NCBI GenBank assembly: GCA_002269645.1
Contig: NIVC01003422.1
Location: 34,512 to 98,511 of the forward strand
Direction: 5' to 3'
Source of the DNA: Macrostomum lignano
Lineage: Eukaryota
Length of the DNA: 64,000 nt
Below the pieces are notes generated by a model. That model saw only the letters and a program-made list of their open reading frames with translations, did not search any database and was not told the DNA's origin. Position 1 is the stretch's first letter. Each line of letters starts with the position of its first letter. Position numbers and translations under genes: made by a program. Below are positions 34,470-37,506 of this stretch, piece after piece.

Positions 34470-35132
34470 ATGCAGCATCTTGCCACTTGCGGCCGGCCAT
34501 TGCTGGACAAGGGATCGCGGGGTTCAACGGTTCCGCCGAGGCAGCTGACGCTGGCGCCGCTCGTGCTGGCGCTACTGCTGGCGCTGCTGCTGGTGGCGCC
34601 GGCGCCCGCAGCCGCGTTCCGGGTGGCGGGCCTCTCCGACTCCGCCGCCATCGAGAAGCGGCAGCTGGTCAAGCCACAGATGCCGGAGCGGTTCAACTCG
34701 GAGGAGGAGCTCAAGATCTACATGCAGCAGCTGGAGGCCTACTACAAGCTGCTGGCCAGGCAGCGGTGAGTCAGGCAGTCAGTCAGTCAGTCAGTCAGTC
34801 AGTCAGTCAGTCAGTCAGTCAGTCAGTCAGTCAGTCAGTCAGTCAGTCAGTCAGGCAGTCAGTCAGTCAGTCAGTCAGTCAGTCAGTCAGTCAGTCAGTC
34901 AGTCAGTCAGTCAGTCAGTCAGGCAGTCAGGCAGTCAGGCAGTCAGTCAGTCAGTCAGTCAGTCAGTCAGTCAGTCAGTCAGTCAGTCAGTCAGTCAGGC
35001 AGTCAGGCAGTCAGTCAGTCAGTCAGTCAGTCAGTCAGTCAGTCAGTCAGTCAGCCATTAAATTTCAGTTTCGGCAAGCGCTCTGACCCCGAAGTCTGGC
35101 AGGACGTTGACAGGGACGCCCTGTACTACTAA
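34470..35132 (+). CDS. npf: Neuropeptide Y/F precursor 1; mature QLVKPQMPERFNSEEELKIYMQQLEAYYKLLARQRF-amide
   Basis: Exons 34470-34765 and 35069-35132. Signal-peptide-like hydrophobic stretch, KR, 36-aa peptide, then GKR. A phase-2 intron splits the Arg codon of RxRF (CG|T), the conserved NPY/NPF intron position. Confidence 0.92.
34770..35054. repeat. (CAGT)n microsatellite filling the NPF1 coding intron
   Basis: Occupies almost the whole 303-nt intron. Confidence 0.97.
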
Positions 35133-35367
35133 GAGAGACTCGATTCCTCTTCTCAACTCTGTGCAAACTACTCTCAATAGTAGAAATTGAATGCTGCTAT
35201 TCGAATTCCAGTTAACAGCAAAAATAAATGCCGCGAATCTGTCGCATATCGCGGTTGCTAATCGATTGATTAGCCGCTGCGGGCGGTTAAGAGACTAGAG
35301 CTTATCAACTGCCGGTCTGTTTTCCTTTTGATGATTTATTTAGCCTTTAATTCGAGCCATTCAAGCT

Positions 35368-35810
35368 TGGTTGGTTGGTTGGTTGGTTGGTTGGTTGGTT
35401 GGTTGGTTGGTTGGTTGGTTGGTTGGTTGGTTGGTTGGTTGGTTGGTTGGTTGGTTGGTTGGTTGGTTGGTTGGTTGGTTGGTTGGTTGGTTGGTTGGTT
35501 GGTTGGTTGGTTGGTTGGTTGGTTGGTTGGTTGGTTGGTTGGTTGGTTGGTTGGTTGGTTGGTTGGTTGGTTGGTTGGTTGGTTGGTTGGTTGGTTGGTT
35601 GGTTGGTTGGTTGGTTGGTTGGTTGGTTGGTTGGTTGGTTGGTTGGTTGGTTGGTTGGTTGGTTGGTTGGTTGGTTGGTTGGTTGGTTGGTTGGTTGGTT
35701 GGTTGGTTGGTTGGTTGGTTGGTTGGTTGGTTGGTTGGTTGGTTGGTTGGTTGGTTGGTTGGTTGGTTGGTTGGTTGGTTGGTTGGTTGGTTGGTTGGTT
35801 GGTTGGTTGG
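35368..35810. repeat. (TTGG)n microsatellite, essentially perfect
   Basis: About 110 copies. Confidence 0.98.
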
Positions 35811-36042
35811 CCAACGCAAATGGACACCGCCTGCAGACCTGCCGACCAAACTGCACAAGCCCATTTTAATTAGTTTCACGCTGTGATGGAAGCAAACAGT
35901 TAAAAATTAAAACAAAAACGATTTACTGCCTACTTTTAGTATTATATTGGGCTAACCAATGATGAAAGTTAAGAAAAAATGATTAATACATGCAGCTGCT
36001 TTACACATGCTTGACCGACGGTTGCCAGATCTAACCAAGCTT

Positions 36043-36302
36043 GATTGATTGATTGATTGATTGATTGAATGATTGATTGATTGATTGATTGATTGATTGA
36101 CTGATTGATTGATTGATTGATTGATTGATTGATTGATTGATTGATTGATTGAATGATTGATTGATTGATTGATTGATTGATTGATTGATTGATTGATTGA
36201 TTTATTGATTGATTTGATTGATTGATTGATTGAATGATTGATTGACTGATTTATTGATTTATTTATTTATTTATTTATTGACTGATTGATTGATTGATTG
36301 AT
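36043..36302. repeat. (GATT)n microsatellite
   Basis: Direct reading. Confidence 0.97.
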
Positions 36303-36791
36303 TTCGTCGTAGGAGACATCTCGCACACTCTTATCAAAGGTTGTCAATCAATTCACTAGGAGGCTGTATTTATTGATGGGCTGCCATAGCAAAAGAATAA
36401 GAGTATATAATTAGTTCGTTCAACCAGGAGTCAGGTATTTCCTAATCTGGCAGCATTATCCACTGGACCAATCATCTATTCGATTGAATCCGAAAGGCAG
36501 AATACATAACCAGCAGAACAGTGCAGTCAGGGCTGCACAGGTGCCATTTGTGACTGACAGAGCCGCTGAGCAATGGATGCTGGGCAATAAACAATGCGAG
36601 GCAGGTTGCTATTGGCGCGCCTTTGCCCCGCTCAAGCCGTGCGGAAACGCTCAACTCTCCGTTCGATCGATTTCAGATTGGCTGCTGCTGCAAATCTCCC
36701 ATCCCACTCCCTGATATCCCCTATTTTGGCCTTCTCACCGCATTTAGCTCCCCTCCCCGCGGGCCGCCCACCGCCTTGTTGTTTCGTCCCT

Positions 36792-36921
36792 TATAAATCC
36801 GACACGATCGAAGCCCGTCAGCCGTTGCCTGTCAGAACTGTTGAAACACAGAACCCTTCCGGACAAATATTGCTTGCTCTCGGGACAGCTGGTTGCCGTT
36901 CTAAGCAGTAGAAAAACAGGT
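36792..36921 (+). promoter_or_regulatory. TATA box and non-coding first exon of NPF precursor 2
   Basis: TATAAA at 36792-36797, donor CAG|GTAAAG at 36920, acceptor cccccgcAG ending at 36995, 12 nt before the ATG. Confidence 0.55.
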
Positions 36922-37007
36922 AAAGCTGATGTTCACCTTCTCATATTCTTTAAGTTTCCGGAAACCGAAACCGAAAATCGACCCCCCCCCCGCAGTGAGA
37001 CTCCGTC

Positions 37008-37506
37008 ATGCCGATCAGCAGCACCATGAAGTCGACAGCGCCCGTCTGCCACCCGCGCCTACTCGTGTGGGTCGCCTTCGCCGCCTTGGTGGCCGCCACC
37101 GCCTCCGCTGCCGCCACCGCCGCGGCCGCCTCTGCCGACCTGCCCTTTGAAGTCGCCGACGCGGCCGGCGCCGCTTTTGAAAAGCGTCAGATCCAGCCGC
37201 CTGCTAAGCCGGATCGGTTCACCACCGTGGAGCAGTTTGACACCTACATGAAGCAGCTGGAGGCTTATCTAAAGCTTATCGGCCGGCAGAGGTGCGGCAT
37301 AATTTATTGCACCTGCCTTATCTGATCTAATTAACCTCAGGTCCAGAGTATCAATAATTGCTTGATAATTACAGCGCCCCAATCCAACCTCCCTTGACCG
37401 CCGCAGATTCGGCAAGCGCTCCGTCTGGCACCGCTACTCCCGACTGCGCAGGAACCCCTGGTGGGTTCTGGGAGACTCCAGCTCGAGCGCTGACTACCTT
37501 GGATAG
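37008..37506 (+). CDS. npf: Neuropeptide Y/F precursor 2; mature QIQPPAKPDRFTTVEQFDTYMKQLEAYLKLIGRQRF-amide
   Basis: Exons 37008-37291 and 37407-37506 (115-nt intron GTGCGG..CCGCAG splitting AG|A). Signal peptide, KR, 36-aa peptide, GKR, then a C-terminal extension. Confidence 0.92.

Follow-up and report, generated by a model that had tools for sequence, protein, structure and literature searches.

The closest described counterparts of the two genes considered here, A and B, which lie head to tail in a 64,000-nt stretch of contig NIVC01003422.1 (the window, by which we mean the whole stretch) of the free-living flatworm Macrostomum lignano, a source organism confirmed by protein searches, are the neuropeptide Y (NPY) genes npy-1 to npy-11 of the planarian Schmidtea mediterranea (Collins et al. 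2010, PMC2953531). Like A and B these belong to an expanded flatworm family, have an intron within the Arg codon ahead of the C-terminal aromatic residue and encode a Gly followed by a Lys-Arg (KR) site, and in several members (NPY-3, -4, -8 and -10) the mature N-terminus is created by dibasic cleavage, as predicted for A and B (PMC2953531). Smed-NPY-1 starts with EPPAKPEFF, to be compared with QIQPPAKPDRF in the gene B peptide (16/36 identity over the peptide), and its N-terminal fragment was detected by mass spectrometry in the pyroglutamyl form pEPPAKPEFFDDPE (PMC2953531); the source of the pyroglutamate is Glu in the planarian peptide and, by prediction, the Gln after KR in A and B. The C-termini differ, being RPRF or RPRY in planarian NPY-1 to -8 and -10 and RQRF in the Macrostomum pair. 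Tandem linkage of planarian npy genes is not reported in the available part of PMC2953531.

The neuropeptide F (NPF) peptides of protostomes (e.g. of Moniezia expansa, molluscs and arthropods; Pfam PF00159) also resemble A and B, with 36-40 residues, an Arg-X-Arg-Phe-amide end and Tyr at positions -10 and -17. They share the N-terminal motif PPxKPxxF, with 12-16/36 identity among the relatives that we recovered, but their X residue is usually Pro, whereas it is Gln in A and B. The intron in the Arg codon occurs in the npf gene of M. expansa (Mair et al. 2000, as quoted in PMC2953531 and PMC9042389) and in vertebrate genes as well (PMC2953531). Vertebrate NPY and peptide YY (PYY) have in common with A and B the length of 36 residues, Pro5, Pro8, Tyr20, Tyr27, Arg33-Gln34-Arg35, the Gly-Lys-Arg that follows and the intron position, and PYY (7rt9) was the best structural match to the predicted helix of A (residues 14-32); they are unlike A and B in their C-terminal Tyr, in Tyr1-Pro2 and in a mature peptide that directly follows the signal peptide.

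Compared with these systems, A and B are very likely functional prepro-neuropeptide genes that form an old tandem pair within an RQRF-amide subfamily seen so far only in Macrostomum. Flatworm NPY/NPF genes have already been described with this gene structure, processing logic and fold, as an expanded family and in tandem, and GenBank already contains A and B as transcript-supported models without a name. The two genes do not alter the picture of the family, their gene structure, processing logic and predicted fold being as expected; the RQRF-amide subgroup and its size are apparently undescribed in the literature searched. Of the at least nine catalogued NPY/NPF genes of M. lignano, five form this group, two of them in the present tandem pair, and the database names of these proteins are at present uninformative or misleading. 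As a flatworm model M. lignano is open to transgenesis and RNAi, and in planarians no neuroendocrine control of germline maturation is better understood than NPY-family signalling through NPY-8/NPYR-1; a reliable list of the M. lignano NPY/NPF genes would be a useful entry point for ligand-receptor pairing and reproductive neuroendocrinology.

Coding structure and family membership of genes A and B

The coding models were obtained by script splicing of the region 34000-38000 and comprise the following features:

34470-34765 joined to 35069-35132, + strand: coding sequence of gene A, 119 aa
34470..34765, + strand: first coding exon of gene A, running from Met1 through the hydrophobic signal region and a propeptide with KR at its end to residue 34 of the mature peptide and the first two bases of Arg35
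34766..35068, + strand: gene A coding intron (GT..AG, phase 2, within the Arg35 codon)
35069..35132, + strand: second coding exon of gene A, with the last base of Arg35, then Phe36, Gly as amide donor, Lys-Arg and a C-terminal peptide of 16 residues before the stop
37008-37291 joined to 37407-37506, + strand: coding sequence of gene B, 127 aa
37008..37291, + strand: first coding exon of gene B, running from the signal region through an Ala-rich propeptide with KR at its end to residue 34 of the mature peptide and the first two bases of Arg35
37292..37406, + strand: gene B coding intron (115 bp, GT..AG, phase 2, within the Arg35 codon)
37407..37506, + strand: second coding exon of gene B, with the last base of Arg35, then Phe36, Gly-Lys-Arg and a C-terminal peptide of 28 residues before the stop

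Reading and script splicing bore out, down to single bases, the description of the region 34470-37506 (+ strand) in an earlier first-pass annotation of this DNA. The genes are arranged head to tail on the + strand with 1,876 bp between the stop codon of A and the ATG of B, and the intron claimed to lie in the penultimate Arg is a phase 2 GT..AG intron in both, splitting the Arg35 codon as CG/T in A and AG/A in B (here and below a slash marks a splice site). The predicted spliced join reads ...RQ(CG in A, AG in B) followed by (T in A, A in B)TTCGGCAAGCGC. The predicted mature peptides, QLVKPQMPERFNSEEELKIYMQQLEAYYKLLARQRF for A and QIQPPAKPDRFTTVEQFDTYMKQLEAYLKLIGRQRF for B, both have 36 residues with Gln1 after KR, P5, P8, Y20, Y27 and an RQRF end followed by GKR, the B peptide carrying P4 besides P5 and P8; the computed monoisotopic masses of their pyroglutamyl, amidated forms are 4498.329 Da (A) and 4337.278 Da (B). 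The putative signal regions have Leu/Ala-rich hydrophobic cores at residues ~26-49 in A, where the structural model has a helix, and ~17-35 in B. A tblastn search of the window with both precursors and both mature peptides gave A and B only and no third copy.

Both precursors exceed the curated cut-off of PF00159 (Hormone_3, pancreatic hormone peptide; 28.7 bits), A with 40.3 bits (E 3e-10, profile positions 3-36) and B with 43.6 bits (E 3e-11, positions 1-36). This match is not a chance pattern and on sequence criteria A and B are members of the NPY/NPF family, whose peptides adopt the pancreatic polypeptide (PP) fold. The hallmark phase 2 intron in the Arg codon, the length of about 36 residues, the Arg-X-Arg-Phe/Tyr end and the Gly plus dibasic site are found in both, in line with the earlier assignment to this family. 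Both also have the conserved prolines of the N-terminal arm and Tyr20/Tyr27 (-17/-10 from the C-terminus), and lack the vertebrate Pro2. The canonical RPRF-amide tail of protostome NPFs is matched at Phe36 but not at position 34, which is Gln in A and B; the two peptides would act as NPFs do, with a variant of the consensus tail. The vertebrate NPY/PYY subfamily is matched at Gln34 but not in Phe36, in the missing Tyr1-Pro2 or in the N-terminus that follows a propeptide and KR. With the peptides of the neuropeptide FF (NPFF)/PQRF-amide type (~8-18 aa) A and B share QRF-amide alone, as they are 36-mers with Arg at -4.

In phmmer searches of the PDB sequences the alignments of both peptides with PYY and NPY were gapless and in the same register (best E 0.015), the one with human PYY extending over 3-36:3-36. 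An AlphaFold2 model of precursor A (from a 36-sequence alignment) has a helix at residues 78-96, i.e. residues 14-32 of the mature peptide, with a pLDDT of ~95, and the best PDB matches found with Foldseek were human PYY (7rt9), NPY bound to Y1R (7x9a), PP bound to Y4R (7x9c) and engineered PP-fold miniproteins, with target-normalised TM scores of 0.70-0.79 and an rmsd of 1.4-1.6 Å at non-significant E-values of 2-10; for PYY, NPY and PP the TM scores are 0.75-0.79, with E of 2-6. The hydrophobic moment of the helix (0.37-0.44) is similar to that of NPY/PYY and barely above that of shuffled sequences. A PP-fold for the two peptides is thus consistent with the models but not proven by them.

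In GenBank, the product of gene A has a 99% identical counterpart in P0001 (BOX15_Mlig011275g2; cluster Mlig011275) and that of gene B an identical one in P0053 (PAA51484.1, BOX15_Mlig011048g3; cluster Mlig011048), both labelled 'hypothetical protein'. Since the GenBank annotation of the assembly was built from a genome-guided RNA-seq transcriptome (StringTie/TACO/TBONE; PMC5730564) and the annotated proteins run across the ...RQR/F junction, these proteins indirectly support the expression and the splice junctions of both genes. The absence of expression or of a spliced junction, which the first-pass annotation had named as grounds for giving up its reading, was therefore not what we found.

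The same tandem pair, with identical mature peptides, is present on a second genomic copy (L001, NIVC01003022.1), which is collinear with the window (92-97% identity overall and 98-100% in unique segments near the genes). The spacing between A and B is 2.8 kb on this copy and 1.9 kb in the window because the intergenic microsatellites differ in length. Redundant gene copies are expected in the DV1 line, which has extra chromosomes (PMC5730564), and a selection test between the two copies was uninformative, as they are 98-100% identical in unique sequence. The automatic UniProt names of the sister models P0002, P0003, P0004 and P0045 ('Gastrin domain-containing', 'Secreted RxLR effector peptide protein', 'GLUCAGON domain-containing') are misleading. 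The models P0002 and P0003, which represent A-like copies, are frameshifted and lack the NCBI BOX15 provenance; their frameshifts are probably errors of the earlier ML2 PacBio assembly. An exact look-up gave no record of P0004 as a called gene.

Residue 34 and the RQRF-amide genes of M. lignano

A search of 1.84 billion representative proteins with a profile built from A and B recovered 48 proteins at E<=1e-3. Among these the RQRF end is found only in M. lignano; the 42 proteins from other organisms have Pro34 in 41 cases and Gly34 in one (P0042), which agrees with the earlier statement that RPRF is the usual invertebrate ending. All matches from outside M. lignano are protostome NPF precursors, including Smed-NPY-1 (P0049) and a krill protein (P0005), and no vertebrate NPY was found at this threshold. 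A second search, with an alignment of the RQRF peptides, added a fifth RQRF member. M. lignano thus has at least five RQRF genes, each with a Gln directly after the basic site, and at least four RPRF genes, so that its NPY/NPF catalogue holds at least nine genes. The RQRF genes are the following:

Gene A, Mlig011275: 36-mer, this window
Gene B, Mlig011048: 36-mer, this window
Gene C, Mlig023721: 36-mer, QLEPPVKPEHFKSIEEFKLYMKELEAYLKLLGRQRF, located on L002 (NIVC01001552.1) at 10001-11109
Gene D, A0A1I8FTC2: 30-mer, no prolines
Gene E, Mlig012587: 34-mer, Gln after RRR

Genes C, D and E share with A and B the tail ...YxKLLGRQRF-GKR besides the Gln after the basic site, but the peptides of D and E are shorter, D has no prolines and C is not in tandem: it is a singleton on a separate contig, with the same phase 2 intron in Arg35. 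For the pyroglutamyl, amidated peptides of C, D and E the computed monoisotopic masses are 4415.387 Da (C), 3643.956 Da (D) and 4076.062 Da (E). P0045 and P0060 are protein entries listed for RQRF genes outside the window. While the pair described in the first-pass annotation does exist, it is not an isolated one, as it belongs to this larger subfamily.

The RPRF genes are Mlig009644, A0A1I8JDA1, Mlig009822 and Mlig007142/003006. Mlig009822 and Mlig007142 form a second NPF tandem pair, ~8 kb apart on L003 (NIVC01000624.1; 1930-2421 and 10001-10426). Their precursors each contain two or three short NPF-like peptides with SRPRF-GKR ends and have no Arg-codon intron; the annotated 'intron' of Mlig007142 merely leaves out one repeat unit. 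A comparable layout, with three peptides, is seen in the krill protein P0005, named Neuropeptide F in its source.

The first-pass annotation had called the peptides vertebrate-like. This description rested on a single residue and was not supported: identity to human NPY/PYY is 11-14/36 (14/36 for A with PYY), no higher than the 12-16/36 to protostome NPFs, no vertebrate NPY appeared in the profile search, and a neighbour-joining (NJ) tree clusters the five RQRF peptides apart from human NPY, PYY and PP. Within the cluster B joins C and E, with A as the outlier. A, B and C all use CAG for Gln34, which differs from the Pro codon CCG by a single transversion. Gln34 is therefore best read, from these comparisons, as a lineage-specific change that would be convergent with the vertebrate Gln34 rather than a vertebrate-like retention, and the most economical reading would be that a single Pro-to-Gln change (CCG to CAG) took place in the macrostomid lineage prior to the expansion of the RQRF genes, independently of that in vertebrate NPY/PYY. 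Position 34 is not invariant in invertebrates, as Gly in P0042 shows. The residue is Val in the NPF of Drosophila. It is Ala in a wasp NPF, which ends in ...GKARYa (PMC5831470).

The tandem arrangement fits the local duplication proposed earlier, but a recent duplication does not agree with the divergence of the two genes. A and B are identical in 19/36 residues (69% nucleotide identity over the peptide), whereas A and B each share 23/36 residues with gene C. Because the identity between the neighbours is low and C is closer to each of them, the duplication is taken to be old and not recent.

Processing, action and alternative explanations

Processing of the two precursors can be proposed by analogy with described systems. 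The hydrophobic signal region would direct the precursor into the secretory pathway, where the signal peptide would be cleaved off; a PC2-type prohormone convertase would cut after the KR before Gln1 and at the KR after Gly37, a carboxypeptidase would remove the basic residues, peptidylglycine alpha-amidating monooxygenase would convert Phe36-Gly to Phe36-amide and the N-terminal Gln would cyclise to pyroglutamate. Neuropeptide processing in planarians depends on PC2 (PMC2953531). The KR-defined N-termini with their predicted pyroglutamate and the Arg-codon intron, all noted in the first-pass annotation, are not new, as they are documented for planarian npy genes (PMC2953531). The 36-mer would fold into a PP-fold hairpin of a Pro-rich N-terminal arm and an amphipathic helix (~14-32), and its amidated RQRF end would be expected to engage a rhodopsin-class receptor of the NPY/NPF type on neuroendocrine or other target cells.

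A precedent for the function of such peptides in flatworms is planarian NPY-8, which activates the NPY receptor (NPYR) NPYR-1 with an EC50 of 36.7 nM and controls germ-cell differentiation (PMC4862687), confirming the remark in the first-pass annotation that flatworm NPY-family peptides include regulators of germline maturation (PMC2953531, PMC4862687). Planarian NPY-1 shares the GRPRF-amide tail with NPY-8, yet it does not activate NPYR-1 (PMC4862687). Receptor specificity among flatworm paralogues is thus not set by the C-terminal tetrapeptide alone and need not lie at position 34, which tempers the emphasis that had been put on residue 34. A more far-reaching scenario is that NPY/NPF signalling in Macrostomum is split into two orthogonal channels, RQRF (at least five genes) and RPRF (at least four), with residue 34 as a receptor switch, convergent with the vertebrate Pro34/Gln34 code (Y1/Y4 versus Y2), and with one RQRF peptide in an NPY-8-like germline role; we regard this as speculative and, on balance, unlikely.

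We weighed three other explanations against the reading of A and B as functional genes of a lineage-specific RQRF-amide subfamily. Macrostomorpha branch early within Rhabditophora, and the RQR that A and B have in common with NPY/PYY, together with the gapless PYY alignment (A 14/36), might indicate that Gln34 is the retained ancestral state of bilaterian NPY, or reflects a special affinity to vertebrate NPY/PYY, which would make the peptides truly vertebrate-like. We consider this very improbable, as M. lignano has RPRF paralogues too, the other protostome relatives recovered all have Pro34 save one with Gly34, the profile drew protostome NPFs and no vertebrate NPY at E<=1e-3, and a single CCG-to-CAG transversion suffices to explain the residue. 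Moreover, A and B end in Phe and not in Tyr, their N-termini are set by KR cleavage and not by signal peptidase followed by Tyr-Pro, and the NJ tree places them apart from NPY/PYY/PP. The tail itself could also be taken to make A and B ligands of an NPFF/QRFP/PrRP-like RFamide receptor instead of an NPY/NPF-type one. PQRF-amide defines the vertebrate NPFF family, and the receptors for NPFF, PrRP and NPY are related. In addition, a schistosome neuropeptide receptor was best modelled on human NPFF receptor 2 (PMC13367911). Nevertheless, this assignment seems improbable to us: in the complete 36-residue PP-fold scaffold, the Pfam match and the position of the intron A and B agree with NPY/NPF and not with the short NPFF-type peptides, position -4 is Arg and not Pro, and NPY-type partners are ample in flatworms, where the NPYRs are greatly expanded (16 in S. 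mediterranea; PMC4862687).

The least credence is given to the third explanation, that A and/or B are decaying duplicates or are transcribed without being processed to bioactive 36-mers. It could be favoured by the many micro- and minisatellites of the region, including those inside the gene A intron, by the redundant gene copies of M. lignano DV1 and by the frameshifts that P0002 and P0003, UniProt models for A-like copies, contain. These frameshifts are, as noted above, probably assembly errors, and both A and B have intact open reading frames (ORFs), canonical splice sites, complete processing motifs and transcript-derived GenBank proteins that are identical or 99% identical. Furthermore, A and B share 22/39 residues of the 36-mer plus GKR, mostly in the helix and the tail, whereas their signal and propeptide regions have no detectable nucleotide similarity, a pattern that fits selection on the peptide.

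Some observations do weigh against an expressed RQRF-amide subfamily that is specific to Macrostomum and newly recognised here. The bootstrap value of the RQRF clade, calculated over 26 columns, is 53%, and falls to 23% with positions 34 and 36 masked. The restriction to Macrostomum reflects database sampling; transcriptomes of other macrostomorphs are probably absent from the protein collections searched. The Foldseek E-values, all above 1, are not significant and the domain is very short, and the evidence for expression and splicing is indirect, deriving from the provenance of the GenBank models. Prior naming is possible as well: the literature search, which did not cover the survey of M. 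lignano expressed sequence tags for neuropeptides by McVeigh et al. 2009, gave no paper on RQRFamide or on these M. lignano genes. The literature matches to 'RQRF' together with neuropeptide were unrelated, the wasp case being internal to DH44.

Transcription units and surroundings of the pair

Signals upstream and downstream of the coding sequences make a non-coding first exon plausible for both genes, in agreement with the first-pass annotation. The candidate features, inferred from patterns and splice signals, are:

33518, + strand: candidate TATAAA box of gene A (pattern)
33548..33723, + strand: putative non-coding first exon of gene A (start approximate, ~30 bp past the TATAAA; ends at donor ATATAAG/GTGAGT)
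33724..34455, + strand: putative 5'-untranslated region (5'-UTR) intron of gene A (inferred from signals; acceptor CCTTTCTCAG (CTTTCTCAG; TTCTCAG) ahead of 34456)
35223..35228, + strand: candidate AATAAA polyadenylation signal of gene A (pattern only)
36792..36797, + strand: candidate TATAAA box of gene B (pattern only)
36822..36919, + strand: putative non-coding first exon of gene B (start approximate; ends at donor AACAG/GTAAAG)
36920..36995, + strand: putative 5'-UTR intron of gene B (76 bp, inferred from signals; acceptor CCCCGCAG (CGCAG) ahead of 36996)
37601..37606, + strand: candidate AATAAA polyadenylation signal of gene B (pattern only)

The UniProt model P0002 opens with a translation of the upstream exon of gene A, FKAAAPLEFLSRSPQHKLSNKNPQILGSAFAITHLSLSNI. 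As many M. lignano mRNAs are trans-spliced (PMC5730564), the acceptor ahead of 34456 could alternatively take a spliced leader instead of ending a 5'-UTR intron. We also considered A and B as a single co-transcribed unit resolved by trans-splicing. This is unlikely, given the AATAAA of A itself; because the two genes fall in different transcript clusters and B has promoter and 5' exon signals of its own, they are regarded as separate transcription units. No significant similarity that would indicate a shared promoter or 5' exon was found between A and B, their similarity at the DNA level being limited to two short stretches, one of 88 bp where the helix is encoded (76%) and one of 18 bp where exon 2 begins.

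The pair is embedded in repeats. The coding intron of gene A is nearly entirely an (AGTC)n microsatellite (34769-35054, ~71 copies, 95% matches) with a few unique bases by the splice sites, and the spacer between A and B holds a perfect (TTGG)111 array (35367-35810) and a (TTGA)65 array (36041-36303). A 14-bp minisatellite (34053-34335) lies inside the putative 5' intron of gene A, a 20-bp minisatellite of 72 copies (31410-32843) is found upstream of this gene, and a 3.9-kb satellite (37763-41666), built of 33-bp units with a higher-order period of 133 bp, follows directly 3' of gene B. The long ORFs in these satellite and minisatellite stretches are repeat artefacts. There is no other called gene within 10 kb on the sister copy L001, and scans of the window for non-coding RNA gave no Rfam or tRNA matches. 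Farther away, the window contains fragments of other genes:

17-300, + strand: exon of the carboxylesterase family (Pfam COesterase, 1e-40)
21928-22782, - strand: ORF with a CRIB/P21-Rho-binding (PBD) domain
54663-55355, - strand: bestrophin exon

Finally, a block at 24001-28000 is AT-rich, with a GC content of 0.30-0.34 compared to ~0.46 in the rest of the window.

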